From Carpediemonas membranifera BICM (taxonomy: Eukaryota > Protista > Fornicata), in NCBI GenBank assembly GCA_019828565.1, contig JAHDYR010000066.1, positions 584,425 to 636,361 on the forward strand: a DNA stretch of 51,937 bases. Direction: 5' to 3'. Below, piece after piece: positions 1-51,937 of the stretch. Position 1 is the first letter of the stretch; each line of letters starts with the position of its first letter. The notes below the pieces were generated by a model. It searched no databases. It was not told the origin of the DNA and saw only the letters and a list, made by a program, of their open reading frames with translations. Both the position numbers and the translations under genes were made by a program.

Positions 1-366
1 CCACACACACAGCGGGCTGACCTCAAGGTCTGGGGCGAGCGCGACGTGGTCGGAAACGTCGTCCACGACGACGTCTACGTCGACTTCTACTGCGGTCTTC
101 ACCCCGCGACGCCGAGACCGAGAAGACCCGGGAGTACGCCAACTGGGACGTCACCTTCCTGGTCGCCGCCACCACCGTCGGCGGCGCCACGGAGTCCCGC
201 CTGACCGCGGACTGGGCGGTGCAGTTTTTGCGACGCCATTGCACGGCCGCACCTGGCGGGAACCATGCGCGACACGGCCTTCCTGAAGGCCTGGGAGGGC
301 AACCTCAGCATCTGGAGTGACTATGTCAGCCAGTGCAAGGCCCGCTGGGCCGAGCTCAACCTATAA
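1..366 (+). CDS. Unit 0 (partial, subfamily A): C-terminal RLE endonuclease end
   Basis: Matches the 3' end of units 2/3/5/11 apart from indels (…CKARWAELNL, TAA 364-366); cut by the window start. Confidence 0.88.
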
Positions 367-563
367 CCAGGTCCCTGCACAGAAATCTGGAGTCGCGACT
401 CGGCTGACTTGGCCACTCTAGGCTGCGTCGTCCCCGAGCCCCCTGCGCCTCCCGCCCCATCGCCGCATCGCATAACGCATCCCCTGCCCCTGCGCGAGAG
501 TAGTTGCTCGAAATTCCGCGGAGTCGCGTGTCGTTCGGACAACCCCCTCCTGTAAATTCGGCC

Positions 564-3500
564 ATGGTATCCAGAGGAAAGTTGCTCGATTCGCCGCCGC
601 AAGGCGACGAATCCTGCCATACATCCGATGAAGGACCAGGTGACACGAATCTACTGACAAGCGATTAGCGCTATTCGCTGCTCTTCTGCGCGTAATGGAC
701 GAAATTCGTCAGCACTGCCCGAAAGGCTCGTGGCCGAAGAACGCTGAGGCCTTCATCGAGGTTTGTATGAACAAAGATCGTTTATTGCGCCTTGTGACGG
801 ACAACAAACGCTTCTTCACGATCAACAACCTTTCTTTGATCACGGACTACGTTCATGCGGCCACAAACCGCTTCGGGCCAGGCCATAAGCCGAAGGCATC
901 CCGCCGTGATGACCACATCGCCAATGCCACTTCACTTCTTCACGCCGCAGCCACCAACCAGGTGTTCACTGCTACGATCTCGATTGATCGTGCCAACGAG
1001 GCCCTCGAGCGCGTGATACGGGGCAGAAGGACCGATGAGCAGCTCATGAGGGAGCACCCTCGTCCGCTCCGCCCGTCCGAGATCGCCGCTCGCCGCGCCA
1101 AGACCGGGCGTCAGTCATACGCCCAACTGATCAGCCGTGTCGAGGAGGCCCGCCCGGCAAGCCCTGCGCGAGACCGCACTGCCTTCCTCGAGGCAGAAGC
1201 ATACGCGTGTCGCGTAGCTGCTGGCCGCGCAGACCGTCAACAGCAGGGTGATAGGCCCCCGAGCCCCACCCCCTGCCGATGCTGCCCCCACCGACTCCGC
1301 TGCCGCCCTAACTGGGCCGCAGCCCGCAGCCGCCCAGCGGGATGACCGGTCTACCGACCCCACCCCCTGCCCAGGCTGCCCCCACCGACTCCGCTGCCGC
1401 CCCTAACTGGGCCGCAGTCCCGCAACCGCCCCGCAGGGTGACCAGGCCCACGCGCCAGACCCCCGCCCAGGTTGCCCCCCACCCAGCCAGAGGAGAGGAA
1501 CATCGACGACACCGCAGTGTCCGAGTTCCTCTCCCTGGCGGGCGTCGAAGGCGGGGAAGGGGAGAGAGCTGAGCCAGAGACCGAGCACGAAGCCCGTGGT
1601 GACTCAGCCAACTCCCCCCTTCGCCCGCCGCCGCAGGTTGACCCCGCCCACCGGCTCACAGGGTGGCTCGACCGCACGACCATCGACGCTGTTCGCCGCA
1701 GCTTTGACGCACATGTACCGCGGGAAGACAGAGACATGTGGTCGACCAACGACCAGGTCGTCGCAACGCTGACGTCTATCGACGCCGTCCGCTGGCTCTC
1801 CCGGGGGCAAAATGGCCAGAACCGCATGTCCAGAGCACGCTGGACGACTCTCCTCGAGCAGGTCTTTGCGGCTCACCCGAGGAACCGGCCTTCGTATGCG
1901 TTCCCGCAAGGCCTGAAGTCGTTCGCACCCAGGTTCGTGGCGTTCATGAGGGAAGGGTTGGGTATGCCAGTCGACCCCGCTCTCCCAGCTGTCCCGCAGC
2001 CAAGGACGGCCCAGCCAGCCAGAAGAAGGCTCACTGCTCCCCGCCCGCAGCCGGAGACCATCCTTCCAGAGCTCCCAGAGGACCTCAAGTTCCTCCCCTC
2101 CCCGACGGAGGCCGGCAGGATTGGGAAGTCGAAGCCCCTCAAGGAAGGGTGCGGTCTCATTCGTGAAGGGTCTCATCAACCTGTTGGAGGCCCTGAACGA
2201 GGTGCCTGCCCAGCAGAAACGGCGTGGCCTTATTGCCATCATGACCCATGGTCAGACGGTGTACAAGCCCGCCAAGAAGCAGGTGACACTGCGGACCCGG
2301 ACCAAGGAGCGCTCGGCCTTCACCAAGGCCTCGGCCGGCTACTACTCCAGTGGCCTGAAGATCCTCCTGTCTGAGGACATGGACCTCAGCCCGACCGAGG
2401 TTGACGAGAAGCTGGTGGAGCTGCAGGCCGAGCCAATGGCAGACCCACGTCTCTTCCACCCACAGCAACGGGCGGGTGCGCTGGAGTCATATGAGGTCAC
2501 CCCGGAGTCTGTGACATGGGCCCTGGACAGGCTCAAAGCAGACTCGGCACCGGGACCCTCGGGCCTGAGTTTCCTTCACTTGAAGCTGGCCTACCGCCTA
2601 CGCAAACACAAGTTTGTTGCTGCTGTCACGCCTCTGATCAACGACATCATCAACGGGGAGCCCCTACACTGAGATCCTGTCGCACTCGAGGCTCGTTGCC
2701 CTGCCTAAGGGAGACTCCAAGGTCCGGCCCATTGCAATGGGCGAGAGCCTGAGACGCCTCGCAGGCAAGGTCCTAGCCCACGATGTCGGGCTGAGGATTA
2801 TTGGCGATGGTGTGTGCGAGGGGCAGTTCGGACTGGGCGAGAGCTGCGGCCTGGACTGCATGGGTGACATTCTGAAGGCAGCGTACGCCGGCGGTGCGCA
2901 GCTGTGCGCCGTTGACATGTCCAATGCGTACGGAACCGTCAGTCGGCAGCATCTGTCTGAGGTCGCACAGGCGTGGGCCCCGGTCTTGCTACCGTACCTG
3001 CACACGATGTATGCCGGGGGCAAGATGATCACACCAACAGGCCTTGTCATCCCGTCCCGGGAGGGCATCCAGCAAGGGGACCCCATATCTCCGCTGCTGT
3101 TCACCCTGGCGATGAAGCCGGTCCTGGACCAGATCAGAGGTGAGTTCCAGGAGTGCAGGATGGTCTCCCTATCAGGACGATGCTTACTTGATCGCGCCAG
3201 CGTCCATGCCGGCCTCACGAGTTGATCGCTTCTACGACCGGATGGCTGAGGTTTGTGGCCGCATCGGCATGCGCGTGAACACGGCTAAGTGTATGGTGAT
3301 CAGCGCTGCTGGCTCCCCGGGTGCCATTCAGCGGGTAGTCAACGGTAGAGCCGTTGGAATCCCTGTTGGGGACGCTCATGGTGAGGCAAGAGCTGTCGAT
3401 GATGTCTTCTCGGAGATGGAGATGGCGACTGCTCGCGTCGTGGAAATGGTGGAGACTGTAGGGCCTTCTGCGGCCAGCGTTGCGCTGAATATGATTCGTT

Positions 3501-4707
3501 CATGCATTCTTGCGATGCCATCCGCAATCTACAGAGCTGTGTCGCCGATTAGGCACGAAAGCAGGACATCCCGCTTCGAGCAGATGCTTAGCCGCAGCGT
3601 AGAGCACATTCTGCAACTAAGAGATGGTCTGGAAGACAAAACTCGTAGAATGGCTCTCGATTATGGAGATTACGGGCTCCGCATGCCAATCCCATCACTC
3701 GTCTGGAAATGCGCATTTTTTTGGGCACGGAACACCAGCTGCACCAGCTGCTTCCGGACCGGTCTGTGCACCTAGACGAGGCCCTGTTTACCGTTGAAGG
3801 CGCCGAAGAGTGGCCTAGGACCAAGGACGAACTCTATGAGATGGAGGCCAAAAAGCCTCAGAAACAACTCACAAAGTACCATAGAGACGCCTGGACAGTC
3901 CAGCACCGCCCATCAACGCCGTCTGACTTCAACTTGGACCGCAATGCGGCCACTCAGGCCCTGAACGACTCCTCCCAGCGCGCTGCCCCGGCGGCTGGAA
4001 TTCTCCGGCAAGAGGCCGCACTCACCCCAATTGAGCTAGAATCGAAGCCTGTTGGCTCAATATTTGTCCCAATTGCCAGGGCACACCTGGATGTCGCCCC
4101 GTTCGAAGAGTGGCCCGAGACTTGCCCCCTGTGTCAGGCCCAGCGCTGCACCTGGCAGCATGCCCTCTCGTGCCCACACACCAAGGGAACCGCCCACACC
4201 GAGCGTCACAACCATGTTAGAGACGCTGTGAGCGCCGTGTTGACCGACGACGACGTTAGAGGTCGACCCATGGCCCGTTGCCAGGCCGAGGTCGCGCTCA
4301 CCTCTCGTCACCCCCGCTACCAGCAGGCCGATACCGAAGCGCCCAGACGCAAGGTGGCCGACCTCATGGTGGCAGGCGAGAGAGACGTGGTCGGGAACCG
4401 TGTCCACGAGGAAGTCTATGTCGACTTCGTGGTCAGCCTGCACCCGCGGGAGGCTGAGCTAGAGAAGCTCCGCGAGTACCGCAACTGGCAGGTCACCTTC
4501 GTGCCTGCTGCCTGCACGGTTCTGGGCGAGACTGAGTCCCGTCTGACCGAGTGCTGGGTCGCCCGCCTCTGTGCCGCGATTCGCAGGCCGGCCCTCGTGG
4601 GCGCCATCCGTGACCGGGTATTCTGGTCCATCTGGGCGGACAACCAGACCGTCTGGTCGGACTATGTCTCCCAGTGCAAGGCCCGTTGGGCCGAGCACCA
4701 CCAATAA
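564..4707 (+). CDS. Unit 1 RT-RLE polyprotein, subfamily B (N2+Lb+RT-B), frameshifted as assembled
   Basis: ORF pieces 695-1345, 1472-2374, 2121-2672, 2737-3225, 3140-3775 and 3709-4707 reconstruct the unit 4 protein; ends …CKARWAEHHQ. Confidence 0.88.
1244..1445 (+). repeat. 93-bp coding minisatellite, 2 copies (unit 1)
   Basis: Core ccctaactgggccgcag occurs twice. Confidence 0.85.
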
Positions 4708-4904
4708 TCTGCCCTCCCCACAAAATGCCGGAGTCGCGACTCGGCTGACTCGGCCACTCTAGGCTGCGTCGTCCCCGAGCCCCCTGCGCCTCCCGCCCCA
4801 TCGCCGCATCGCATAACGCATCCCCTGCCCCTGCGCGAGAGTAGTTGCTCGAAATTCCGCGGAGTCGCGTGTCGTTCGGACAACCTGGGAAAGTAAATTC
4901 GGCC
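4708..4904 (+). other. Conserved inter-ORF spacer (3'UTR/5'UTR junction), representative of 12 copies (367-563, 9166-9363, 13903-14102, 18325-18522, 22779-22976, 27279-27474, 31867-32063, 36418-36613, 41004-41200, 45500-45696, 50044-50241)
   Basis: About 22 subfamily-specific nt follow the stop; the sequence is then near-identical from ggagtcgcgactc to the ATG in all copies. Confidence 0.9.
4892..4898 (+). promoter_or_regulatory. AGTAAAT, candidate Giardia-type poly(A) signal (AGTRAAY) or AT-rich initiator, 6 nt upstream of the ATG
   Basis: Present in 11 of 12 spacers (tgtaaat in the poorly resolved first one) and is one of the few AT-rich patches in a GC-rich spacer; its meaning depends on the host. 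Confidence 0.35.
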
Positions 4905-7900
4905 ATGGTATCCAGAGGAAAGTTGCTCGATTCGCCGCCGCAAGGCGACGAATCCTGCCATACATCCGATGAAGGACCTGGTACGTCTATTGACAAGCGA
5001 TTAGCGCTGTTCGCTGCTCTTCTGCGGTGGATTAACGATTTCCATCCATCCAGCTCGAAGAACTCTTGGCCGAAGGATACTGAGGCCTTTATTGAGATCT
5101 GCATGAACAAAGAACGTCTATTGAGCCTTATTTCGGATTACAAGCGTTTCTTCACGGTGAGCAACTTGGTTTGGATAACCAACTACGTTCACGCGGCGAC
5201 AAATCGCTTCGGCCCCGGCCACAAGGTGAAAGCTTCCCGCCGCGACGATCACGTCGCAAATGCTGTCGCCATTCTGCACGCTGCAGCCACTGATCAGGCG
5301 TTCACATCAACGCTCACCATCGAACGTGCGAACGAGGCTCTTGAGCGTATGATCGAGCACGCCATCGACCCAGTGAAAGCGAGAAGGATGAACCTCCTTC
5401 AGACTGTCCGAGGCCCCTCAGAGGACGACGTCTGTAACCGCCTTGGTGAAGCGGGTCCAGCATGCGCCCCGCCCAGCCAGCCCACCGAATGCGGGCATCG
5501 CCCGCGAGTATGCGAGGGCCGATGCCTTCGCCCGACGCCAGGGAGACCGGCCCCCGAGCCCCACCCCTGCCGATGCTGCCCTCACCGACTCCGCTGCCGC
5601 CCCTAACTGGGCCGCAGCCCGCAGCCGCCCCGCAGGGTGACCGGCCCCCGAGCCCCCACCCCCTGCCGATGCTGCCCCCACCGACTCCGCTGTCGCCCTA
5701 ACTGGGCCGCAGCCCGCAGCCACACAGCAGGATGACCGGCCCCCGAGCCCCACCCCTGCCGATGCTGCCCCCACCGACTCCGCTGCCGCCCTAACTGGGC
5801 CGCAGCCCGCAGCCGCCCCCGCAGGGTGACAGGCCCACGCGCCAGACCCCCGCCCAGGTTGCCCCCCACCCAGCCAGAGGAGAGGAACATCGACGACACC
5901 GCAGTGTCCGAGTTCCTCTCCCTGGCGGGCGTCGAAGGCGGGGAAGGGGAGAGAGCTGAGCCAGAGACCGGGCACGAAGCCCGTGGTGACTCAGCCAACC
6001 CTCCCCTTCGCCCGCCGCCGCAGGCAAGCCAAGGCCCTGAACCACGTACATTTGTGTACACAGGACCTCCTGGCGCTCTTAACCAGATCACGGAGGCGCA
6101 CCCTGGGCCAGCATCATCCACGCCTACCCAGGGGTGGCTGAGCCTTGCCAAGCTGGATCGACTCCGGCATAGGTTCACCGCAAACATCCCGACCCACCTG
6201 GTCGAGTCTCATTGGGGCTCGGCCGAGCAGGTAAGGTCCACACTCACGACAGCAGTCCGGGTCGGAGAAGTGTCCGGCGGGCAGAATGGCGTCCACAGGA
6301 TGTCACGTGAACGCTGGACACAGCTTCTCGAGGGCCTCTTCGCGGACGAGCCGGACAGGCGGCCACCCTACAGCTTCCCCAAAGGGTTCAGGCAGTTCAC
6401 GCCGAGGTTTGTGTTCTTCATGAGAGAGGCATGCGGTCTTCCGCCGGACCCTAGTGCTGAGGCCCCGCCCCATGCCGGGCCCAGCCAGCCCCCACGGAGA
6501 CCGAGAGCAGCGCTCCTGCCCCTGCCGCCGGCCGACCCTCTCGCGGGCGACCTGCCGATCGAGCTGTCATATCTGCCTCACCCCGCGGAAGCCGGACGCA
6601 TCGGCCGGGCGAAGCCCTCACGGAAGGCTGCCGCGGGATTCGTGAACGGGCTGATCCGGCTGCTCGTGACCCTGGCGAACGCGCCGCAGAACCGGAAGCG
6701 GGAGGCGCTAGCCGCCGTCCTTCGGCACGCGCGGACAGTATATCGCCCTGGGAAGAAGGGGATCTCCCTCCGCACCCGCTCCCCAGAGCGAGCTGCATAC
6801 TCGAAGGCCGCCGCCGGGTATTACTCCAGCGCCATGAAGGTCCTGCTCTCTGAGGAGATGACACTCACGCCGGGTCAGATCGACCAGAAGCTGGAGGAGA
6901 TGCAGGCCGCCCCGCTGAGAGATCCCCAGACGCCGGCTCTCACACGCCGCGCCGACGCGCTCACGTCCTTTGAGGTCACCTTCGAGGCCGTAGACGAGGC
7001 GCTGGGGAAGATGAGAGCGGACTCGGCCCCCGGCCCATCCGGGCTGAGCTTCTTGCATCTGAAACTCGCTCATCGACTCCGGAAGGGCCAGTTGGTGCAG
7101 GCACTCCTGCCCCTTGTGCGCGACATCATTGCCGGCGAGGAGTACACGGGTATCCTCGCTCACGCACGGCTCATCGCACTGCCGAAGGGCGAAGATCGGG
7201 TCAGACCCATCGCCATGGGCGAGGCGCTCCGGCGCCTGGCCGCGAAGGTCCTCGCCTCGGCCGTCTCGTCGCGTCTCCGTAATGACGGCGTCTGCCCTGA
7301 GCAGTACGGGCTCGGCGAGAGCTGCGGCCTGGACGTTATGACCGCGAAAATTGCGGAAGCGTACGACGAAGGGCTCAAGGTCTGTGCTGTTGACATGACT
7401 AACGCCTACGGAACCGTGTCCCGCGCCCACCTCCGTGTGGTGCTCGAGGCGCACGCCCCAGCCGCCCTCCCCTATTTCTCCACCATGTATGGCGAGGGCA
7501 AGCTGCTGACCCCGACCGGGCACGTCATAGCCAGCCGAGAGGGCATCCACCAGGGGGACCCCCTGTCCCCAGCCCTCTTCACGCTGGCTATGACGCCCCT
7601 CCTCGGCAGCCTCCGGTCGCAACTTCCCAGTACGACCATCCTCGGCTACCAGGACGACGTGTACGGGCTGCTGCCCCGGCAGGCAGACCAGCGGACGATC
7701 GATACATTCTACGCGCGTGTGGAGGCGGCGTGTGGAGCCGTCGGTATGCGGGTGAACCGACTGAAGTGCCTCGTCCTGGCGAAGACGGGGACACTGGGCC
7801 AAAAAAGCGGACGGGTGCTCGGTATCCCCGTAGGCGACGACGCGGGCGTTGCCAACGCTGTGGACGCGGCCTTCTCGCGCATGGAGGACGCGCTCGTGCG

Positions 7901-9165
7901 GGTGGCCGAGATGACCGAGGCAGTGGGGCCGAAAGCGGCCTCGGTGGCGGTCAATCTGATCAGGTCTTGCGTTCTTCCGATGCCTTCGGCAATCTTTCGC
8001 AACGTGAGCCCGATTGGCCACGAATGCCGCACAAAAAGCCTGGAGCGGAAGCTGAGAGCTGCCATCGCACGCATCCTTCAGGTATCCGACGTCACAAAGA
8101 TACCCGAAGAGCGTCTAGCGCTCGATTTCGCCGACTACGGGCTCCGTATCCCTCTTCCGTCGCTCATCTGGAAGTGTGCATTTTTGGGCGCAGCCCACCA
8201 GCTGCACGCCCTAGGCATCACCCGGGACATGGAGGCGGCGCTGTTCTCTCCAGAAGAGTGCCAGGAGTGGCCCAAAACCATCCAGGAACTGTTTAGCATC
8301 GAGGCTGAAAAGCCGCAGAAGACACTCACTACGATGCTTGCAAAAGCCTGGACGGCCAAGTACCGCCCCAAGACACCCGCCGACTTCGGCCTAGACCCCG
8401 AGGAGGTCTCCCAGGGCCTCTCTGACTGCAGCTCCCTCGAGGCCCCCCGCCGCCGGACTCCTCCGCAAAGAAGCCGCGCTGAGCCCCCTCGACCTCGAGC
8501 AGACCTCCTGCGACAGCGTGTTCGTCCCCGTCACCCGGGCGCACCTCAACATCGCCCCATTCCGCGAGATGCCGGTCACCTGCCCCCTCTGTGGCCAGCA
8601 GGACATCACGTGGCGCCACGCCCTCGGCTGCTCCTACCTGAAGGATGGCGCGACCAACGCACGCCACGACAGCATCAAGATGGCTGTGCACGATCTCGTG
8701 ACCCAGGACGACCTCCGCGGGCGCCCCATCCCCCACTGCAAGCCCGAGTTCGATCTGCTCGACACCCACCCTAGGTTCCGCGTCACGAGCGCCGACGCCC
8801 CCACACACAAGCGGGCTGACCTCAAGGTCTGGGGCGAGCGCGACGTGGTCGGAAACGTCGTCCACGACGACGTCTACGTCGACTTCTACTGCGGTCTTCA
8901 CCCCCGCGACGCCGAGACCGAGAAGACCCGGGAGTACGCCAACTGGGACGTCACCTTCCTGGTCGCCGCCACCACCGTCGGCGGCGCCACGGAGTCCCGC
9001 CTGACCGCGGACTGGGCGGTGCAGTTTTGCGACGCCATTGCACGGCCGCACCTGGCGGGAACCATGCGCGACACGGCCTTCCTGAAGGCCTGGGAGGGCA
9101 ACCTCAGCATCTGGAGTGACTATGTCAGCCAGTGCAAGGCCCGCTGGGCCGAGCTCAACCTATAA
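4905..9165 (+). CDS. Unit 2 RT-RLE polyprotein, subfamily A (N1+La+RT-A), frameshifted as assembled
   Basis: ORFs 4845-5606, 5826-8774 (RT, GYQDD) and 8518-9165 (CPLC..H..C, RLE). Confidence 0.9.
5539..5830 (+). repeat. 93-bp coding minisatellite, 3 copies (unit 2)
   Basis: Core occurs 3 times. Confidence 0.9.
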
Positions 9166-9363
9166 CCAGGTCCCTGCACAGAAATCTGGAGTCGCGACTC
9201 GGCTGACTTGGCCACTCTAGGCTGCGTCGTCCCCGAGCCCCCCTGCGCCTCCCGCCCCATCGCCGCATCGCATAACGCATCCCCTGCCCCTGCGCGAGAG
9301 TAGTTGCTCGAAATTCCGCGGAGTCGCGTGTCGTTCGGACAACCTGGGAAAGTAAATTCGGCC

Positions 9364-13902: not shown

Positions 13903-14102
13903 CCAGGTCCCTGCACAGAAATCTGGAGTCGCGACTCGGCTGACTTGGCCACTCTAGGCTGCGTCGTCCCCGAGCCCCCCTGCGCCTCCCGCCCCATCGC
14001 CGCATCGCATAACGCATCCCCTGCCCCTGCGCGAGAGTAGTTGCTCGAAATTCCGCGGAGTCGCGTGTCGTTCGGACAACCCCTGGGAAAGTAAATTCGG
14101 CC

Positions 14103-18324: not shown

Positions 18325-18522
18325 TCTGCCCTCCCCACAAAATGCCGGAGTCGCGACTCGGCTGACTCGGCCACTCTAGGCTGCGTCGTCCCCGAGCCCC
18401 CCTGCGCCTCCCGCCCCATCGCCGCATCGCATAACGCATCCCCTGCCCCTGCGCGAGAGTAGTTGCTCGAAATTCCGCGGAGTCGCGTGTTGTTCGGACA
18501 ACCTGGGAAAGTAAATTCGGCC

Positions 18523-31866: not shown

Positions 31867-32063
31867 TCGCCTCACCAGAAATGTGCCGGAGTCGCGACTC
31901 GGCTGACTCGGCCACTCTAGGCTGCGTCGTCCCCGAGCCCCCCTGCGCCTCCCGCCCCATCGCCGCATCGCATAACGCATCCCCTGCCCCTGCGCGAGAG
32001 TGGTTACCCCAAGTTCCGCGGAGTCGCGTGTCGTTCGGACAACCTGGGGAAGTAAATTCGGCC

Positions 32064-36417: not shown

Positions 36418-36613
36418 TCGCCTCACCAGAAATGTGCCGGAGTCGCGACTCGGCTGACTCGGCCACTCTAGGCTGCGTCGTCCCCGAGCCCCCTGCGCCT
36501 CCCGCCCCATCGCCGCATCGCATAACGCATCCCCTGCCCCTGCGCGAGAGTGGTTACCCCAAGTTCCGCGGAGTCGCGTGTCGTTCGGACAACCTGGGGA
36601 AGTAAATTCGGCC

Positions 36614-39600: not shown

Positions 39601-41003
39601 AGAAGTGCCTCATCCTGACGAAGGCCGGATCACTTGGCAGACGGAGCGGACGCGCGTTGGGAATCCCTGTAGGAGACGACGCCGGCATCTCCCAGGCAGT
39701 GGATGATATCTTCACGCGCATGGAGGAGGCGCTCGAACGCGTCGCAGAAATGACGGAGACCGTGGGGCCAAAAGCAGCCGCCGTAGCGATCAACATGATC
39801 AGGTCATGCGTTCTACCGATGGCTTCAGCAGTATTTCGCAACGTGAGCCCGATCGGGCACGAATGCCGAACCAAAAGGCTCGAACACACGCTGAGAACCG
39901 TTATCGGCCGCATACTTCAAGAAACGGACGTTTCAAATATCCCAAAAGAACGCCTTGCACTTGATTATGATGACTACGGGCTTCGGATTCCACTTCCCTC
40001 TCTCATTTGGCAATGTGCGTTTTTAGGAGCAGCGCACCAGCTGCACGCCCTAGGCATCACAAGGGCCATGGAGGAGGAGCTATTCGCTCCCAATGGGTGC
40101 CAGAGGTGGCCCAAGACCACCCAGGACCTGTTCGACATCGAGGCTGAAAAGCCACAGAAGAACCTCACAACGATGTTGGCAGAGACCTGGACGGCCAATT
40201 ACCGCCCCAAGACACCCCACGACTTCAGTCTAGACCCCGAGGAGGTCTCCCAGGGCCTCACCGACTGCAGCTCCCTCACCGCACCCGCCGCCGGAATCCT
40301 CAGGAAGGAGGCCAGCCTGAGCCCCCTGGACCTCGAGCACGTCTCATGCGACAGCGCGTTCGTCCCAATCGCCCGGGCACACCTCAATGTCGCCCCATTC
40401 CGCGAAATGCCGGTCACATGTCCCCTTTGTGGCCAGCAGGATGTCACGTGGCGCCACGCCTTAGGGTGCGCCCACCTCAAGGAAGGCGCCATTACCGCAC
40501 GCCACGACCACGTTAAGATGGCTGCGCACGACCTGGAAGCCCAGGACGACCTACGCGGGCGGCCCATTCCCCGTTGCCGTCCAGAGGTCGACCTCCGCGA
40601 CACACACCCACAGTTCCGTGTCACCAACGCCGCAGCGCCCACACACAAGCGGGCCGACCTCAAGGTCTGGGGCGAGCGCGACGTGGTCGGAAACGCGGTA
40701 CACGATGATGTATACGTGGACTTCTACTGCGGGCTGCACCCCCGCGACGCCGAGCTCGAGAAGACCAAGGAGTACGCCAACTGGGACGTCACCTTCCTGG
40801 TCGCCGCCACCACCGTCGGCGGCGCCACAGAGTCCCGCCTGACCACGGACTGGGCGGTGCAGTTTTGCGACGCCATCGCACGGCCGCACCTGGCGGGAAC
40901 CATGCGCGACCTGGTCTTCCTCAAGACTTGGGAGGGCAACATGACCGTCTGGAGCGACTACGTCACTCAGTGCAAGGCCCGCTGGGCCGAACTTCGCCCC
41001 TAA
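36614..41003 (+). CDS. Unit 9 RT-RLE polyprotein, subfamily C; best C copy
   Basis: N-terminal pieces plus the uninterrupted 1009-aa ORF 37974-41003, which spans linker, RT, CCHC and RLE. Confidence 0.93.
37290..37675 (+). repeat. 93-bp coding minisatellite, 4 copies (unit 9)
   Basis: Core occurs 4 times. Confidence 0.9.
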
Positions 41004-41200
41004 TCGCCTCACCAGAAATGTGCCGGAGTCGCGACTCGGCTGACTCGGCCACTCTAGGCTGCGTCGTCCCCGAGCCCCCCTGCGCCTCCCGCCCCATCGC
41101 CGCATCGCATAACGCATCCCCTGCCCCTGCGCGAGAGTAGTTGCTCGAAATTCCGCGGAGTCGCGTGTCGTTCGGACAACCTGGGAAAGTAAATTCGGCC

Positions 41201-44200
41201 ATGGTATCCAGAGGAAAGTTGCTCGATTCGCCGCCGCAAGGCGACGAATCCTGCCATACATCCGATGACGGACCAGGTGACACGAATTACCTGAAACTAG
41301 CGCTGTTCGCTGCGCTCCTGCGCGTAATGGAAGAAATTCGTCAGCACTGCCCGAAAGGCTCGTGGCCGAAGAACGCTGAGGCCTTCATCGAGGTTTGTAT
41401 GAACAAAGATCGTTTATTGCGCCTTGTGACGGACAACAAACGCTTCTTCACGATCAACAACCTTTCTTTGATCACGGACTACGTTCATGCGGCCACAAAC
41501 CGCTTCGGGCCAGGCCATAAGCCGAAGGCATCCCGCCGTGATGACCACATCGCCAATGCCACTTCACTTCTTCACGCCGCAGCCACCAACCAGGTGTTCA
41601 CTGCTACGATCTCGATTGATCGTGCCAACGAGGCCCTCGAGCGCGTGATACGGGGCAGAAGGACCGATGAGCAGCTCATGAGGGAGCACCCTCGTCCGCT
41701 CCGCCCGTCCGAGATCGCCGCTCGCCGCGCCAAGACCGGGCGTCAGTCATACGCCCAACTGATCAGCCGTGTCGAGGAGGCCCGCCCGGCAAGCCCTGCG
41801 CGAGACCGCACTGCCTTCCTCGAGGCAGAAGCATACGCGTGTCGCGTAGCTGCTGGCCGCGCAGACCGTCAACAGCAGGGTGATAGGCCCCCGAGCCCCA
41901 CCCCTGCCGATGCTGCCCCCACCGACTCCGCTGCCGCCCTAACTGGGCCGCAGCCCGCAGCCGCCCAGCGGGATGACCGGTCTACCGACACCACCCCTGC
42001 CCAGGATGCCCCCACCGACTCCGCTGCCGCCCTAACTGGGCCGCAGCCCGCAGCCGCCCAGCGGGATGACCGGTCTACCGACACCACCCCTGCCCAGGCT
42101 GCCCCCACCGACTCCGCTGCCGCCCTAACTGGGCCGCAGCCCGCAACCGCCCCGCAGGGTGACAGGCCCACGCGCCAGACCCCCGCCCAGGTTGCCCCCA
42201 CCCAGCCAGAGGAGAGGAACATCGACGACACCGCAGTGTCCGAGTTCCTCTCCCTGGCGGGCGTCGAAGACGGGGAAGGGGAGAGAGCTGAGTCAGAGAC
42301 CGGGCACGAAGCCCGTGGTGACTCAGCCAACCCTCCCCTTCGCCCGCCGCCGCAGGCAAGCCAAGGCCCTGAACCACGTACATTTGTGTACACAGGCCCT
42401 CCTGGCGCTCTTAACCAGATCACGGAGGCGCACCCTGGGCCAGCATCATCCACGCCTACCCAGGGGTGGCTGAGCCTTGCCAAGCTGGATCGACTCCGGC
42501 ATAGGTTCACCGCAAACATCCCGACCCACCTGGTCGAGTCTCATTGGGGCTCGGCCGAGCAGGTAAGGTCCACACTCACGACAGCAGTCCGGGTCGGAGA
42601 AGTGTCCGGCGGGCAGAATGGCGTCCACAGGATGTCACGCGAACGCTGGACACAGCTTCTGGAAGGCATTTTCGCTGACGAGCCGGACAGGCGGCCACCC
42701 TACAGCTTCCCGAAAGGGTTCCGCGAGTTCACACCAAGGTTGGTCTACTTCATGAGGGAGGCCTGCGGACTCCGGCAGGACCCCACAACCGGTGGTCCAC
42801 CGCACACCAGACCCAGTCTGACCCAGCGGAGACCGAGAGCCGCACTCCTCCCCATGCCACCAACTGACCCCCATCGCAGGCGACCTGCCCCTCGAACTGG
42901 CGTTCCTTCCCCATCCAGCTGAAGCCGGCCGTATCGGCCGATCAAAGCCCTCGCGAAAGGCGGCAGCCAGGTTTGTGAACGGGCTGATCCAGCTGCTCGT
43001 GGCCCTTGCCAACGCCCCGGAGAGTCGGAAGCGAGAGGCGCTAGCCGCCGTCCTTCGGCACGCGCGGACCGTATACCGCCCTGGGAAGAAGGGCGTTTTC
43101 TCTCCGGGCCCGCTCTCCGGAGCGAGCTGCATACTCGAAGGCCGCCGCAGGGTACTATTCAAGCGCCATGAAGGTCCTGCTTTCGGCGGAAATGACACTG
43201 ACACCGGGAGAGATCGACCAGAAGCTGGAGGAAATGCAGGCCACCCCACTTCACGATCCCCAGACACCGGCACTCACACCCCACACCGACGCACTGACGT
43301 CCTTTGAGATCACGTTCGAGGCGGTTGACGAAGCCCTAGGAAGGATGAGGGCGGACTCGGCACCGGGCCCATCCGGGCTGAGCTTCTTGCATCTCAAACT
43401 GGCCCACAGACTGCGGAAAGGCAAGCTTGTCCAGGCGCTGCTACCTCTCGTGAGAGATATCATCGCAGGAGAGGAGTACACAAGCATCCTCGCGCACGCA
43501 CGGCTCATCGCGCTACCAAAGGGCCAAGATCGCGTCAGACCCATCGCTATGGGCGAGTCTCTCCGACGCCTTGCCGCGAAGGTCCTTGCCTCAGCCGTCT
43601 CGGCCCGCCTCCGGGACGATGGGGTCTGCCCAGAGCAGTATGGGCTGGGTGAGAGCTGCGGCCTGGACATCATGACCAACAAGATCGCCGAGGCCTACGA
43701 GTCGGGCCACAAGGTCTGTGCTGTGGACATGTCCAATGCGTATGGCACAGTGTCCCGGGCTCACCTTCATGCAGTACTGCAGGCCTATGCCCCAGCCGCA
43801 CTCCCATACTTCACTACGATGTACAGAGAGGGCAAGCTGCTTACGCCGACTGGCAAGGTCATTGACAGCCGCGAGGGCATCCACCAGGGTGACCCGCTCT
43901 CGCCCGCACTCTTCACGCTGGCAATGATGCCCATCCTGAAGAGCCTCCGGTCTCAGCTCCCGAGCGCCACCATTCTCGGGTACCAAGATGACTTGTACGG
44001 TCTCTTGCCCGCCCACGCGGACCAACGCTCGATAGAGACGTTCTACGTGCGAGTGGAAGCAGCATGCAAGGCCGTTGGTATGCGCGTCAACAGGCAGAAG
44101 TGCCTCATCCTGACGAAGGCCGGATCACTTGGCAGACGGAGCGGACGCGCGTTGGGAATCCCCGTAGGAGACGACGCCGGCATCTCCCAGGCAGTGGATG

Positions 44201-45499
44201 ATATCTTCACGCGCATGGAGGAGGCGCTCGAACGCGTCGCAGAAATGACGGAGACCGTGGGGCCAAAAGCAGCCGCCGTAGCGATCAACATGATCAGGTC
44301 ATGCGTTCTACCGATGGCTTCAGCAGTATTTCGCAACGTGAGCCCGATCGGGCACGAATGCCGAACCAAAAAGGCTCGAACACACGCTGAGAACCGTTAT
44401 CGGCCGCATACTTCAAGAAACGGACGTTTCAAATATCCCAAAAGAGCGCCTTGCACTTGATTATGATGACTACGGGCTTCGGATTCCACTTCCCTCTCTC
44501 ATTTGGCAATGTGCGTTTTTAGGAGCAGCGCACCAGCTGCACGCCCTAGGCATCACAAGGGCCATGGAGGAGGAGCTATTCGCTCCCAATGGGTGCCAGA
44601 GGTGGCCCAAGACCACCCAGGACCTGTTCGACATCGAGGCTGAAAAGCCACAGAAGAACCTCACAACGATGTTGGCAGAGACCTGGACGGCCAATTACCG
44701 CCCCAAGACACCCCACGACTTCAGTCTAGACCCCGAGGAGGTCTCCCAGGGCCTCACCGACTGCAGCTCCCTCACCGCACCCGCCGCCGGAATCCTCAGG
44801 AAGGAGGCCAGCCTGAGCCCCCTGGACCTCGAGCACGTCTCATGCGACAGCGCGTTCGTCCCAATCGCCCGGGCACACCTCAATGTCGCCCCATTCCGCG
44901 AAATGCCGGTCACATGTCCCCTTTGTGGCCAGCAGGATGTCACGTGGCGCCACGCCTTAGGGTGCGCCCACCTCAAGGAAGGCGCCATTACCGCACGCCA
45001 CGACCACGTTAAGATGGCTGTGCACGACCTGGTAGCCCAGGACGACCTACGCGGGCGGCCCATTCCCCGTTGCCGTCCAGAGGTCGACCTCCGCGACACA
45101 CACCCACAGTTCCGTGTCACCAACGCCGCAGCGCCCACACACAAGCGGGCCGACCTCAAGGTCTGGGGCGAGCGCGACGTGGTCGGAAACGCGGTACACG
45201 ATGATGTATACGTGGACTTCTACTGCGGGCTGCACCCCCGCGACGCCGAGCTCGAGAAGACCAAGGAGTACGCCAACTGGGACGTCACCTTCCTGGTCGC
45301 CGCCACCACCGTCGGCGGCGCCACGGAGTCCCGCCTGACCGCGGACTGGGCGGTGCAGTTTTGCGACGCCATCGCACGGCCGCACCTGGCGGGAACCATG
45401 CGCGACCTGGTCTTCCTCAAGACTTGGGAGGGCAACATGACCGTCTGGAGCGACTACGTCACTCAGTGCAAGGCCCGCTGGGCCGAACTTCGCCCCTAA
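41201..45499 (+). CDS. Unit 10 RT-RLE polyprotein, subfamily C
   Basis: ORF 41141-42922 reads in frame from the ATG through the minisatellite into the linker, supporting a single ORF; it continues as 43168-44460 and 44564-45499. Confidence 0.9.
41876..42165 (+). repeat. 93-bp coding minisatellite, 3 copies (unit 10)
   Basis: Core occurs 3 times, in frame. Confidence 0.9.
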
Positions 45500-45696
45500 T
45501 CGCCTCACCAGAAATGTGCCGGAGTCGCGACTCGGCTGACTCGGCCACTCTAGGCTGCGTCGTCCCCGAGCCCCCCTGCGCCTCCCGCCCCATCGCCGCA
45601 TCGCATAACGCATCCCCTGCCCCTGCGCGAGAGTGGTTACCCCAAGTTCCGCGGAGTCGCGTGTCGTTCGGACAACCTGGGAAAGTAAATTCGGCC

Positions 45697-48600
45697 ATGG
45701 TATCCAGAGGAAAGTTGCTCGATTCGCCGCCGCAAGGCGACGAATCCTGCCATACATCCGATGAAGGACCTGGTACGTCTATTGACAAGCGATTAGCGCT
45801 GTTCGCTGCTCTTCTGCGGTGGATTAACGATTTCCATCCATCCAGCTCGAAGAACTCTTGGCCGAAGGATACTGAGGCCTTTATTGAGATCTGCATGAAC
45901 AAAGAACGTCTATTGAGCCTTATTTCGGATTACAAGCGTTTCTTCACGGTGAGCAACTTGGTTTGGATAACCAACTACGTTCACGCGGCGACAAATCGCT
46001 TCGGCCCCGGCCACAAGGTGAAAGCTTCCCGCCGCGACGATCACGTCGCAAATGCTGTCGCCATTCTGCACGCTGCAGCCACTGATCAGGCGTTCACATC
46101 AACGCTCACCATCGAACGTGCGAACGAGGCTCTTGAGCGTATGATCGAGCACGCCATCGACCCAGTGAAAGCGAGAAGGATGAACCTCCTTCAGACTGTC
46201 CGAGGCCCTCAGAGGACGACGTCTGTAACCGCCTTGGTGAAGCGGGTCCAGCATGCGCCCCGCCCAGCCAGCCCACCGAATGCGGGCATCGCCCGCGAGT
46301 ATGCGAGGGCCGATGCCTTCGCCCGACGCCAGGGAGACCGGCCCCCGAGCCCCACCCCTGCCCAGGTTGCCCCCACCGACTCCGCTGTCGCCCTAACTGG
46401 GCCGCAGCCCGCAGCCACACAGCAGGGAGACCGGCCCCCGAGCCCCACCCCTGCCCAGGTTGCCCCCACCGACTCCGCTGCCGCCCTAACTGGGCCGCAG
46501 CCCGCAGCCACACAGCAGGGAGACCGGCCCCCGAGCCCCACCCCTGCCGATGCTGCCCCCACCGACTCCGCTGCCGCCCTAACTGGGCCGCAGCCCGCAG
46601 CCACACAGCAGGGAGACCGGCCCCCGAGCCCCACCCCTGCCCAGGTTGCCCCCACCGACTCCGCTGCCGCCCTAACTGGGCCGCAGCCTGCAGCCGCCCC
46701 GCAGGGTGACAGGCCCACGCGCCAGACCCCCGCCCAGGTTGCCCCCACCCAGCCAGAGGAGAGGAACATCGACGACACCGCAGTGTCCGAGTTCCTCTCC
46801 CTGGCGGGCGTCGAAGGCGGGGAAGGGGAGAGAGCTGAGCCAGAGACCGGGCACGAAGCCCGTGGTGACTCAGCCAACCCTCCCCTTCGCCCGCCGCCGC
46901 AGGCAAGCCAAGGCCCTGAACCACGTACATTTGTGTACACAGGCCCTCCTGGCGCTCTTAACCAGATCACGGAGGCGCACCCTGGGCCAGCATCATCCAC
47001 GCCTACCCAGGGGTGGCTGAGCCTGCCAAGCTGGATCGACTCCGGCATAGGTTCACCGCAAACATCCCGACCCACCTGGTCGAGTCTCATTGGGGCTCGG
47101 CCGAGCAGGTAAGGTCCACACTCACGACAGCAGTCCGGGTCGGAGAAGTGTCCGGCGGGCAGAATGGCGTCCACAGGATGTCACGCGAACGCTGGACACA
47201 GCTTCTCGAGGGCCTCTTCGCGGACGAGCCGGACAGGCGGCCACCCTACAGCTTCCCCAAAGGGTTCAGGCAGTTCACGCCGAGGTTTGTGTTCTTCATG
47301 AGAGAGGCATGCGGTCTTCCGCCGGACCCTAGTGCTGAGGCCCCGCCCCATGCCGGGCCCAGCCAGCCCCCACGGAGACCGAGAGCAGCGCTCCTGCCCC
47401 TGCCGCCGGCCGACCCTCTCGCGGGCGACCTGCCGATCGAGCTGTCATATCTGCCTCACCCCGCGGAAGCCGGACGCATCGGCCGGGCGAAGCCCTCACG
47501 GAAGGCTGCCGCGGGATTCGTGAACGGGCTGATCCGGCTGCTCGTGACCCTGGCGAACGCGCCGCAGAACCGGAAGCGGGAGGCGCTAGCCGCCGTCCTT
47601 CGGCACGCGCGGACAGTATATCGCCCTGGGAAGAAGGGGATCTCCCTCCGCACCCGCTCCCCAGAGCGAGCTGCATACTCGAAGGCCGCCGCAGGGTACT
47701 ATTCAAGCGCCATGAAGGTCCTGCTCTCTGAGGAGATGACACTCACGCCGGGTCAGATCGACCAGAAGCTGGAGGAGATGCAGGCCGCCCCGCTGAGAGA
47801 TCCCCCAGACGCCGGCTCTCACACGCCGCGCCGACGCGCTCACGTCCTTTGAGGTCACCTTCGAGGCCGTAGACGAGGCGCTGGGGAAGATGAGAGCGGA
47901 CTCGGCCCCCGGCCCATCCGGGCTGAGCTTCTTGCATCTGAAACTCGCTCATCGACTCCGGAAGGGCCAGTTGGTGCAGGCACTCCTGCCCCTTGTGCGC
48001 GACATCATTGCCGGCGAGGAGTACACGGGTATCCTCGCTCACGCACGGCTCATCGCACTGCCGAAGGGCGAAGATCGGGTCAGACCCATCGCCATGGGCG
48101 AGGCGCTCCGGCGCCTGGCCGCGAAGGTCCTCGCCTCGGCCGTCTCGTCGCGTCTCCGTAATGACGGCGTCTGCCCTGAGCAGTACGGGCTCGGCGAGAG
48201 CTGCGGCCTGGACGTTATGACCGCGAAAATTGCGGAAGCGTACGACGAAGGGCTCAAGGTCTGTGCTGTTGACATGACTAACGCCTACGGAACCGTGTCC
48301 CGCGCCCACCTCCGTGTGGTGCTCGAGGCGCACGCCCCAGCCGCCCTCCCCTATTTCTCCACCATGTATGGCGAGGGCAAGCTGCTGACCCCGACCGGGC
48401 ACGTCATAGCCAGCCGAGAGGGCATCCACCAGGGGGACCCCCTGTCCCCAGCCCTCTTCACGCTGGCTATGACGCCCCTCCTCGGCAGCCTCCGGTCGCA
48501 ACTTCCCAGTACGACCATCCTCGGCTACCAGGACGACGTGTACGGGCTGCTGCCCCGGCAGGCAGACCAGCGGACGATCGATACATTCTACGCGCGTGTG

Positions 48601-50043
48601 GAGGCGGCGTGTGGAGCCGTCGGTATGCGGGTGAACCGACTGAAGTGCCTCGTCCTGGCGAAGACGGGGACACTGGGCCAAAAAAGCGGACGGGTGCTCG
48701 GTATCCCCGTAGGCGACGACGCGGGCGTTGCCAACGCTGTGGACGCGGCCTTCTCGCGCATGGAGGACGCGCTCGTGCGGGTGGCCGAGATGACCGAGGC
48801 AGTGGGGCCGAAAGCGGCCTCGGTGGCGGTCAATCTGATCAGGTCTTGCGTTCTTCCGATGCCTTCGGCAATCTTTCGCAACGTGAGCCCGATTGGCCAC
48901 GAATGCCGCACAAAAAGCCTGGAGCGGAAGCTGAGAGCTGCCATCGCACGCATCCTTCAGGTATCCGACGTCACAAAGATACCCGAAGAGCGTCTAGCGC
49001 TCGATTTCGCCGACTACGGGCTCCGTATCCCTCTTCCGTCGCTCATCTGGAAGTGTGCATTTTTGGGCGCAGCCCACCAGCTGCACGCCCTAGGCATCAC
49101 CCGGGACATGGAGGCGGCGCTGTTCTCTCCAGAAGAGTGCCAGGAGTGGCCCAAAACCATCCAGGAACTGTTTAGCATCGAGGCTGAAAAGCCGCAGAAG
49201 ACACTCACTACGATGCTTGCAAAAGCCTGGACGGCCAAGTACCGCCCCAAGACACCCGCCGACTTCGGCCTAGACCCCGAGGAGGTCTCCCAGGGCCTCT
49301 CTGACTGCAGCTCCCTCGAGGCCCCCGCCGCCGGACTCCTCCGCAAAGAAGCCGCGCTGAGCCCCCTCGACCTCGAGCAGACCTCCTGCGACAGCGTGTT
49401 CGTCCCCGTCACCCGGGCGCACCTCAACATCGCCCCATTCCGCGAGATGCCGGTCACCTGCCCCCTCTGTGGCCAGCAGGACATCACGTGGCGCCACGCC
49501 CTCGGCTGCTCCTACCTGAAGGATGGCGCGACCAACGCACGCCACGACAGCATCAAGATGGCTGTGCACGATCTCGTGACCCAGGACGACCTCCGCGGGC
49601 GCCCCATCCCCCACTGCAAGCCCGAGTTCGATCTGCTCGACACCCACCCTAGGTTCCGCGTCACGAGCGCCGACGCCCCCACACACAAGCGGGCTGACCT
49701 CAAGGTCTGGGGCGAGCGCGACGTGGTCGGAAACGTCGTCCACGACGACGTCTACGTCGACTTCTACTGCGGTCTTCACCCCCGCGACGCCGAGACCGAG
49801 AAGACCCGGGAGTACGCCAACTGGGACGTCACCTTCCTGGTCGCCGCCACCACCGTCGGCGGCGCCACGGAGTCCCGCCTGACCGCGGACTGGGCGGTGC
49901 AGTTTTGCGACGCCATTGCACGGCCGCACCTGGCGGGAACCATGCGCGACACGGCCTTCCTGAAGGCCTGGGAGGGCAACCTCAGCATCTGGAGTGACTA
50001 TGTCAGCCAGTGCAAGGCCCGCTGGGCCGAGCTCAACCTATAA
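45697..50043 (+). CDS. Unit 11 RT-RLE polyprotein, subfamily A
   Basis: ORFs 45361-47112, 47013-47852 and 47890-50043 (717 aa, RT to RLE); one -1 and one +1 indel. Confidence 0.92.
46330..46715 (+). repeat. 93-bp coding minisatellite, 4 copies (unit 11)
   Basis: Core occurs 4 times, in frame. Confidence 0.9.
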
Positions 50044-50066
50044 CCAGGTCCCTGCACAGAAATCTG

Positions 50067-50206
50067 GAGTCGCGACTCGGCTGACTTGGCCACTCTAGGC
50101 TGCGTCGTCCCCGAGCCCCCCTGCGCCTCCCGCCCCATCGCCGCATCGCATAACGCATCCCCTGCCCCTGCGCGAGAGTGGTTACCCTAAGTTCCGCGGA
50201 GTCGCG
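50067..50206 (+). ncRNA. Putative structured cis-RNA element (long imperfect stem-loop) in the spacer; representative copy
   Basis: Nested pairings by eye: cgcgactc/gagtcgcg, gactt/aagtt and ggccactct/agagtggtt. No folding program was run. Confidence 0.45.
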
Positions 50207-50241
50207 TGTCGTTCGGACAACCTGGGAAAGTAAATTCGGCC

Positions 50242-51937
50242 ATGGTATCCAGAGGAAAGTTGCTCGATTCGCCGCCGCAAGGCGAAGAATCCTGCCATAC
50301 ATCCGATGAAGGACCAGGTGACACGAATTACCAGAAACTAGCGCTGTTCGCTGCGCTCCTGCGCGTAATGGACGAAATTCGTCAGCACTGCCCGAAAGGC
50401 TCGTGGCCGAAGAACGCTGAGGCCTTCATCGAGGTTTGTATGAACAAAGATCGTTTATTGCGCCTTGTGACGGACAACAAACGCTTCTTCACGATCAACA
50501 ACCTTTCTTTGATCACGGACTACGTTCATGCGGCCACAAACCGCTTCGGGCCAGGCCATAAGCCGAAGGCATCCCGCCGTGATGACCACATCGCCAATGC
50601 CACTTCACTTCTTCACGCCGCAGCCACCAACCAGGTGTTCACTGCTACGATCTCGATTGATCGTGCCAACGAGGCCCTCGAGCGCGTGATACGGGGCAGA
50701 AGGACCGATGAGCAGCTCATGAGGGAGCACCCTCGTCCGCTCCGCCCGTCCGAGATCGCCGCTCGCCGCGCCAAGACCGGGCGTCAGTCATACGCCCAAC
50801 TGATCAGCCGTGTCGAGGAGGCCCGCCCGGCAAGCCCTGCGCGAGACCGCACTGCCTTCCTCGAGGCAGAAGCATACGCGTGTCGCGTAGCTGCTGGCCG
50901 CGCAGACCGTCAACAGCAGGGTGATAGGCCCCCGAGCCCCACCCCTGCCGATGCTGCCCCCACCGACTCCGCTGCCGCCCTAACTGGGCCGCAGCCCGCA
51001 GCCGCCCAGCGGGATGACCGGTCTACCGACACCACCCCTGCCCAGGATGCCCCCACCGACTCCGCTGCCGCCCTAACTGGGCCGCAGCCCGCAGCCGCCC
51101 AGCGGGATGACCGGTCTACCGACACCACCCCTGCCCAGGCTGCCCCCACCGACTCCGCTGTCGCCCTAACTGGGCCGCAGCCCGCAGCCGCCCCGCAGGG
51201 TGACAGGCCCACGCGCCAGACCCCCGCCCAGGTTGCCCCCCACCCAGCCAGAGGAGAGGAACATCGACGACACCGCAGTGTCCGAGTTCCTCTCCCTGGC
51301 GGGCGTCGAAGCAGGGGAAGGGGAGAGAGCTGAGTCAGAGACCGGGCACGAAGCCCGTGGTGACTCAGCCAACCCTCCCCTTCGCCCGCCGCCGCAGGCA
51401 AGCCAAGGCCCTGAACCACGTACATTTGTGTACACAGGCCCTCCTGGCGCTCTTAACCAGATCACGGAGGCGCACCCTGGGCCAGCATCATCCACGCCTA
51501 CCCAGGGGTGGCTGAGCCTGCCAAGCTGGATCGACTCCGGCATAGGTTCACCGCAAACATCCCGACCCACCTGGTCGAGTCTCATTGGGGCTCGGCCGAG
51601 CAGGTAAGGTCCACACTCACGACAGCAGTCCGGGTCGGAGAAGTGTCCGGCGGGCAGAATGGCGTCCACAGGATGTCACGTGAACGCTGGACACAGCTTC
51701 TCGGAAGGGCATCTCTTCGCGGACGAGCCGGACAGGCGGCCACCCTACAGCTTCCCGAAAGGGTTCCGCGAGTTCACACCAAGGTTGGTCTACTTCATGA
51801 GGGAGGCCTGCGGACTCCGGCAGGACCCCACAACCGGTGGTCCACCGCACACCAGACCCAGTCTGACCCAGCGGAGACCGAGAGCCGCACTCCTCCCCAT
51901 GCCACCAACTGACCCCATCGCAGGCGACCTGCCCCTC
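50242..51937 (+). CDS. Unit 12 (partial, subfamily C): N2 domain, minisatellite, linker
   Basis: ORFs 50206-51333, 51200-51607 and 51508-51912; C-type sequence follows tacagcttcc; cut by the window end. Confidence 0.86.
50917..51208 (+). repeat. 93-bp coding minisatellite, 3 copies (unit 12)
   Basis: Core occurs 3 times. Confidence 0.9.

Follow-up and report, generated by a model that had tools for sequence, protein, structure and literature searches.

The window analysed here is a stretch of 51,937 nucleotides (C65:584425-636361) that forms the final 52 kb of C65, a 636,361-bp contig in the 24.2-Mb, 69-contig assembly of the fornicate protist Carpediemonas membranifera, matching the published genome of this species (24.2 Mb, 69 contigs; PMC8516963). 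It is filled by tandem, co-oriented copies of retrotransposons that lack long terminal repeats (non-LTR retrotransposons) and code for a reverse transcriptase (RT) and a restriction-like endonuclease (RLE), and each junction between copies carries the first 13 bases of a glutamate tRNA gene, tRNA-Glu(CTC). Part of the longest open reading frame (ORF) is 100% identical to a Carpediemonas membranifera hypothetical protein at NCBI. The arrangement of the copies, and of related arrays on other contigs (designated C with a number), leads us to propose that the tRNA gene is probably the insertion target and that it is rebuilt with each insertion.

The elements, their lineages and their protein

Neighbouring copies are joined by a shared block of ~250 nt. 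The 13-mer that opens this block has 12 matches in the window, all on the + strand and spaced 4341-4737 bp apart, where 0.23 are expected, and the 13-mer that closes it likewise has 12. Cutting at these sites yields 11 full and two partial co-oriented units with a unit length of 4.3-4.7 kb, and the block is present at 12/12 junctions. MAFFT alignment of the 11 full units confines large insertions and deletions (indels) to an internal 93-bp repeat, so the array contains no foreign or host DNA. A first-pass annotation of this DNA had described a 52-kb head-to-tail array of 13 co-oriented units without host DNA, built by three RT/RLE lineages sharing one junction, and this description stands.

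The lineages, which we call A, B and C, follow one another in the order B A B B A B C C C C C B C (lineage A comprises elements 1 and 4, lineage B the leading fragment and elements 2, 3, 5 and 11, and lineage C elements 6-10 and 12). Copies of the same lineage differ by 0.07-0.6% outside the 93-bp repeat. Between lineages, the RT-RLE proteins are 53% (A-B), 55% (A-C) and 79% (B-C) identical, with synonymous divergence (dS) of 0.85-1.6 and a ratio of nonsynonymous to synonymous divergence (dN/dS) of 0.15-0.29; A, B and C thus have the appearance of old lineages under purifying selection. The first-pass annotation was right to count three, with the correction that they are mosaics: the 5' coding module is 99-100% identical between A and C and only 63-74% identical in B, whereas in the RT module B groups with C, and the initial ~290 nt of the unit are 97-98% identical across all three. 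A fourth, older lineage, D, has 64% protein identity to A and includes a 5'-truncated copy on C52; its two copies, both of them the most distant from the tRNA gene, differ by 2.3%, whereas differences within A, B or C do not exceed 0.6%. Upstream of the window, C65:577005-580447 is occupied by 3.4 kb of other repetitive DNA with internal 168-bp repeats, which splits the first, 5'-truncated B copy of the window's array.

The RT domain is recognised as Pfam RVT_1 in lineages A, B and C (E 1.5e-15 to 2.3e-14), and its best sequence relatives among solved structures (PDB) are R2 proteins. The C-terminal endonuclease part gave no PDB or Pfam match from sequence, and the fold search alone succeeded: an AlphaFold2 (AF2) model of the C-terminal 272 residues, with a predicted local distance difference test score (pLDDT) of 71.6 and above 85 in the nuclease core, returned R2 proteins as its top seven Foldseek matches (E 2e-6 to 2e-3), followed by the PD-(D/E)XK enzymes MspJI and BbvCI. 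Alignment with distant relatives leaves C79, C82, H91, C95, R106, H107, D158, D179 and K193 invariant. Judged by these conserved motifs and the predicted fold, the elements are RLE-type non-LTR retrotransposons, as the first-pass annotation had held; they also lack LTRs, are truncated variably at the 5' end and have a fixed 3' junction. Two other assignments do not fit. Penelope-like elements also form head-to-tail tandems, but they carry a GIY-YIG endonuclease or none and are ruled out by the PD-(D/E)XK fold with its CCHC knuckle; the R2 clade sensu stricto has a 28S rDNA target and N-terminal zinc-finger/Myb domains, whereas here the target is a tRNA gene and Pfam detected neither domain in the N-terminal parts.

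Upstream of the RT, the N-terminal frame is evidently coding, as amino acids are conserved between A and B where nucleotides diverge. This module has no Pfam domain and no match in the ESM Atlas, and its AF2 model was unusable (pLDDT 43). The 93-bp repeat, which is in frame and present in every unit of all lineages in 2.5-6.5 copies, encodes a Pro/Ala/Thr-rich unit of 31 residues and is located at the joint of the mosaic modules. In elements 6 and 10 the N-terminal module continues through the repeat in a single open frame; the stop codon of element 4 lies at 18322-18324.

In a library of 1.8 billion proteins, only 14 match at E <1e-30. The nearest foreign full-length relatives are metagenome or draft-genome proteins of 33-35% identity, and no Giardia protein was among the sequence matches. 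The contigs of the closest foreign relatives (loci L045 and L063) contain no tRNA and end too soon for the targets to be compared. The closest of these relatives, P0014 (35% identity; GCA_002919055.1, contig PPCM01001310.1, L063:3291-4853), has two neighbours, a gene in which RVT_1 is accompanied by a weak match to Dam methyltransferase, and a Ty3/chromo element, a neighbourhood reminiscent of the Dam-carrying retrotransposons in a 2026 preprint that lists Carpediemonas.

The tRNA-Glu(CTC) gene and the junction block

The block occurs in arrays on nine contigs (~59 junctions, ~4.5 kb each), and the assembled 3' ends of these arrays reveal where its tRNA bases come from. On C6 and C26 no element follows the last block; instead, the block's final 13 nt together with the sequence after them make up a complete tRNA, which ARAGORN identifies as tRNA-Glu(CTC) and which scores 61.3 bits in Rfam on C6, C26 and C11. 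A tRNA query against the whole assembly found three full tRNA-Glu(CTC) genes only, those on C6, C11 and C26. It also returned a copy on C54 that is broken, and two genes resembling tRNA-Glu(TTC). Each of the intact assembled tRNA-Glu(CTC) genes thus closes an array at its 3' end. All assembled 3' ends are identical, with the junction falling after tRNA base 13 every time, and beyond the array-end tRNAs the flanks have only a short trailer and a T-run in common, as is the case for other tRNA paralogues in this genome. At the broken copy (C54:267700-267910), where the BLAST match starts at query base 24, a deletion across the junction has cut a C-type element inside its CCHC motif and joined it without a gap to the tRNA's 3' part. 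GAG makes up ~77% of Glu codons (counted in long open frames from host-only flanks), and the tRNA-Glu(CTC) gene is therefore unlikely to be dispensable to the host.

The block itself is composed of ~170 nt of 3' untranslated region (3'UTR) from the upstream element, then tRNA bases 1-13, then ~70 nt of the next element (Table 1). Its first part can be assigned to the 3'UTR because block variants follow the upstream element: base 22 is T at 8/9 junctions with an upstream B copy and at 2/21 others (p 6e-5), with no association with the type of the downstream element (p 0.20), and a 12-nt variant tracks an upstream C copy (p 0.002). On two contigs the first copy has no block upstream. That on C43 is full-length, with nothing before it but the 13 tRNA bases, a little leader sequence and then unrelated DNA, and the 5'-truncated D copy on C52 has tRNA bases 1-13 and then unrelated DNA upstream; the first ~170 nt are therefore neither the native upstream region of the tRNA nor a 5'UTR. 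The first-pass annotation had taken the shared block for the common target or cis-acting RNA, which holds for its last 13 nt, derived from the target, and does not hold for the rest, which is upstream 3'UTR and downstream 5' leader.

Known RNA families and ribozymes were absent at Rfam gathering scores across the window and at E up to 10 around a junction. The 3'UTR does not fold more stably than shuffled sequence (z +1.3). For the 5' leader there is a slight gain in stability (z -2.1 to -2.5); the tRNA-derived bases pair, in lineage A, with coding sequence ~165 nt downstream, and lineage B folds differently. Whether the 5' leader resembles a tRNA, with sequences like an A-box and a B-box, was considered and dropped, as the Rfam tRNA model gave no support. 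Read-set matches came from two runs, each with two short pieces of 151-293 nt. One contig from run X1 extends from 3'UTR across the 13 tRNA bases into the 5' end of a B-type copy. Run X2 (2018), a microbial-mat metagenome, holds two 151-nt contigs identical to lineage A (window 15537-15687 and 17030-17180), which places the organism, or a very close relative of it, in that habitat.

Table 1 Features of the array in the window, with the basis for each assignment
Feature	Position	Strand	Basis
Leading fragment, lineage-B 3' end (ORF end and 3'UTR), continuing upstream of the window	1..557	+	99% identity to 3' ends of elements 2, 3, 5 and 11; B-type ORF end
tRNA-Glu(CTC) bases 1-13, TCGGCCATGGTAT	558..570	+	Exact match; same as bases 1-13 of the intact tRNA that closes the arrays on C6, C26 and C11
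Further exact copies of the tRNA 13 nt, TCGGCCATGGTAT (start positions)	4899, 9358, 14097, 18517, 22971, 27469, 32058, 36608, 41195, 45691, 50236	+	
Element 1, lineage A, body and 3'UTR	571..4898	+	Unit cutting, alignment, exact 13-nt matches
Element 2, lineage B	4912..9357	+	Unit cutting, alignment, 13-nt matches; Pfam RVT_1 in ORF 5826-8774
Element 3, lineage B, 6.5 copies of the 93-bp repeat	9371..14096	+	Tandem Repeats Finder (TRF), unit cutting, 13-nt matches
Element 4, lineage A, fewest frame breaks (two overlapping open frames)	14110..18516	+	ORF list, frame comparison
Element 4, N-terminal coding module; first in-frame ATG at 14103-14105, tRNA bases 7-9	14103..14780	+	ORF list, sequence, A/B amino-acid conservation
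Element 4, 93-bp (31-codon) tandem repeat inside the ORF	14800..15105	+	TRF
Element 4, reverse transcriptase domain	16324..16920	+	Pfam RVT_1, E 2e-14, residues 396-594 of ORF 15139-18324
Element 4, predicted CCHC zinc knuckle and PD-(D/E)XK restriction-like endonuclease	17740..18132	+	Invariant columns and Foldseek of AF2 model
Element 4, 3'UTR; from 18347, block common to all lineages	18325..18516	+	Stop codon, variant linkage, block absent before first copies
Element 5, lineage B	18530..22970	+	Unit cutting, 13-nt matches
Element 6, lineage C	22984..27468	+	Unit cutting, 13-nt matches
Element 7, lineage C	27482..32057	+	Unit cutting, 13-nt matches
Element 8, lineage C	32071..36607	+	Unit cutting, 13-nt matches
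Element 9, lineage C, RT-RLE ORF 37974-41003 open	36621..41194	+	ORF list, Pfam, 13-nt matches
Element 10, lineage C	41208..45690	+	Unit cutting, 13-nt matches
Element 11, lineage B	45704..50235	+	Unit cutting, 13-nt matches
Element 12, lineage C, cut by the contig end (C65:636361)	50249..51937	+	Contig placement, 13-nt match

How the arrays may have grown

We consider it likely that these elements are tRNA-gene-specific RLE non-LTR retrotransposons whose insertion duplicates or re-supplies 13-17 bp and so regenerates the target, such that serial insertions stack. Target-primed reverse transcription would take place at the 5' end of the tRNA-Glu(CTC) gene, with staggered nicks, one ~0-4 nt upstream of tRNA base 1 and the other between bases 13 and 14, giving the duplication of 13-17 bp; alternatively, the 3' end of the RNA may already hold the tRNA bases. 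Immediately downstream, the new copy would have a complete, rebuilt tRNA gene, whose upstream flank would now be the 3'UTR of the element. The rebuilt gene would be the next target, so that co-resident lineages would stack head-to-tail with the oldest copies far from the tRNA and the youngest beside it. The first in-frame ATG would lie in the tRNA-derived bases, and a copy would be transcribed from or through the 3'UTR of the preceding copy, which would explain why the block has stayed near-identical although protein identity between the lineages is no more than 53-79%. Growth at the tRNA end fits the 5'-truncated first copies, which at five loci begin at element positions 2405, 3400, 3522, 3771 and 3977, as well as the A-type ORF end of the first copies (7/7 examined; D has the same ORF end) and the tRNA-distal position of the D copies.

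Several observations weigh against this proposal. An empty tRNA-Glu(CTC) site is absent from the assembly, and the pre-insertion state is thus not seen. The opening 13-mer has eight isolated matches in the genome; the four inspected (C1:1385663, C2, C67 and C6:1729602) lie in unrelated sequence, and the remaining ones are at C1:1420581 and on C4, C30 and C35. The first copies on C11, C54, C56, C15 and C65 are 5'-truncated and have no upstream tRNA half, which needs either a deletion of the target on insertion, of the kind reported for Utopia (PMC4640811), or some other seeding of arrays, for example by read-through RNAs carrying the tRNA. Target duplication and a target-mimicking 3' end are indistinguishable here, the copies of A, B and C are too similar to resolve a fine age gradient, and some insertions may have occurred at internal junctions. 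Finally, no copy in the window is open end to end, each being interrupted by one frame break or more; we suspect long-read errors, because 37/46 small indels between same-lineage copies fall in homopolymer runs.

In a more far-reaching version, tRNA-Glu(CTC) would not belong to the host at all any more. All working genes would then be by-products of retrotransposition flanked upstream by transposon 3'UTR, read-through RNAs of lineage A would seed new gene copies and new arrays at fresh sites, and the block would serve as 3'UTR and as promoter or leader of the next copy, with the start codon in the tRNA bases. Lineage A read-through RNAs carrying the tRNA would explain the truncated A-type first copies without an upstream tRNA half, and each array would be a time-ordered log of competing, module-swapping lineages; we nonetheless think this version rather unlikely.

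Other accounts dispense with serial insertion into the host gene. The elements might recognise the junction block (3'UTR plus 13 tRNA bases) and insert at any array junction, the tRNA being no more than the historical entry point. In keeping with this, the 3'UTR and tRNA bases 1-13 are unchanged at every junction, recognition of the upstream side only would make every junction a target, and the lineages are interleaved in the window. However, the junction and the tRNA share no sequence past base 13, and the D copies and truncated first copies are always at the tRNA-distal end, which fits tRNA-end growth though it is not decisive, and we regard self-targeting as improbable. The first-pass annotation had suspected site-specific RLE elements that build their own array, and the fixed tRNA-Glu(CTC) junction at the assembled 3' ends agrees with that part of its proposal; its choice of the element itself as target does not survive, as the target is the host tRNA-Glu(CTC) gene that closes the arrays on C6, C11 and C26. 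It is very improbable, too, that unequal crossing-over or segmental duplication, acting on a few original insertions, was the main source of array growth in place of serial retrotransposition. Within-lineage identity of 99.4-99.9%, five consecutive C copies and shared clustered variants, which suggest gene conversion, would all be accommodated, but adjacent copies are not consistently the closest pairs (4 sites separate elements 7 and 9, and 24 separate 9 and 10), the interleaved lineages have dS >0.8, and the arrays, at nine or more separate loci, differ in their first copies and in where these are truncated.

The first-pass annotation had also raised a telomeric, subtelomeric or centromeric domain. 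An array of this kind, maintained by the elements as a structure, is scarcely credible here. The arrays on C65, C15, C43 and C52 do run off contig ends with the 3' end outward, no telomere is assembled anywhere, which leaves room for a terminal position of these arrays, and the relative Giardia has telomere-associated RLE elements (PMC10999387). Those on C6, C11, C26 and C54, however, lie 60-250 kb inside contigs and are followed by the tRNA gene and unique DNA; ordinary genes adjoin all four, and on C6 a tRNA-Leu gene follows tRNA-Glu(CTC). Pattern searches found no TAGGG or TTAGGG runs in the assembly, whose telomeres are themselves unassembled, and simple repeats are absent from the window end and from 18 contig ends. 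The window, placed on its contig, runs off the end mid-unit without a telomere repeat. Most simply, the contig-end arrays on C65, C15, C43 and C52, whose distal ends the assembly lacks, are assembly breaks.

Other repeat families and comparison with known systems

Further element types occur in this genome, some of them close to tRNA genes. A second RLE family, with ~25% protein identity to the tRNA-Glu family and units ~3.45 kb apart, is found antisense just downstream of tRNA-Thr(AGT) at 4/5 loci (C1:480620-483692, C19:41697-44769, C24:219371-222443 and C39:27727-30799). The fifth, C6:1106184-1109256, resembles an empty site of this family: the tRNA and the following 37 nt are common to all five loci, and C6 shares nothing beyond them, which suggests insertion ~37 nt downstream of tRNA-Thr(AGT). 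A third RT family forms several arrays with a spacing of ~3.98 kb (C39:757285-813163, C24:285753-340635, C44:14065-26883, C7:403052-407503 and C6:1263819-1268269). Genes for tRNAs of several kinds (Phe, Thr, Glu and another) have in common 0.8-1.5-kb repeats with 97-99.8% identity, which stop 0-4 nt before tRNA base 1; the loci concerned, covering 1.0-1.5 kb upstream of tRNA genes, are L049/L050, L051/L059, L057/L061, L054 with the C43 flank, and L062 with the C52 flank. Ty3-like elements integrating at RNA polymerase III start sites would be expected to give this pattern, so that tRNA genes seem to be insertion hot spots for several element types here.

The arrays matter in several respects. 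Current attempts at programmable gene insertion build on site-specific RLE retrotransposons, and a natural family that spares its target would be a useful model of harmless integration. The arrays also offer a readable record of how lineages compete and exchange modules. In work on the Carpediemonas genome, they account for several contig breaks and ~1% of the assembly, and they counsel caution against taking these repeats as telomeres or centromeres.

Among known systems, R2 of 28S rDNA comes closest in sequence and fold, both in the RT and in the CCHC/PD-(D/E)XK nuclease, and it shares 5' truncations and probably an upstream-dependent mode of transcription. Unlike R2, with its 28S target, the Carpediemonas element has no N-terminal zinc finger detectable by Pfam and no hepatitis delta virus (HDV)-like ribozyme detectable by Rfam, and it has instead a helical N-terminal module and a 31-residue repeat. 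In Giardia, a related fornicate, the RLE elements GilM and GilT (Genie) form head-to-tail arrays, as Arkhipova and Morrison reportedly described in 2001 (summarised in PMC10999387); those arrays are joined to telomere repeats, whereas the Carpediemonas arrays are closed by a tRNA gene and showed no telomere link. In bacteria, integrative elements and prophages integrate in tRNA genes and restore the gene from the attachment site. The outcome is the same, a tRNA gene that still functions and a target that can be used again, but these are DNA elements of another kingdom that use a tyrosine recombinase.

Closer to the present case, tRNA-specific RLE elements are known from Trichomonas (NeSL-1_TV, tRNA-Pro) and planaria (LIN25_SM, tRNA-Glu; LIN15_SM, tRNA-Arg) (Kojima and Jurka 2015; PMC4640811). 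They share with the Carpediemonas family an RT followed by a C-terminal zinc knuckle and RLE and a fixed site in a tRNA gene, and one of them is from a metamonad. Their descriptions set them apart, as they have been reported only as target assignments; we found no published report of target regeneration, long stacks or occupation of all copies for these three, and no publication on the Carpediemonas elements. Utopia, a group of RLE elements specific for the U2 snRNA gene, resembles the present arrays in other ways, notably in Phytophthora and Nasonia, with old lineages side by side in a low-copy small-RNA gene, tandems and truncated copies without an upstream target half. Several Utopia lineages share few U2 genes by tandem insertion and destroy the target, the first 38 bp of U2 being lost on insertion, such that disrupted genes outnumber intact ones (PMC4640811). 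In Carpediemonas, by contrast, the tRNA is rebuilt and only a 13-base remnant of the gene remains between copies. Regeneration would bear on the puzzle that Utopia poses, of old lineages persisting in a handful of targets, as it would remove the cost to the host and renew the target indefinitely. The novelty in Carpediemonas lies in features that occur together: insertion that spares the target, long stacks, elements at each assembled copy of the gene and a junction common to mosaic lineages.

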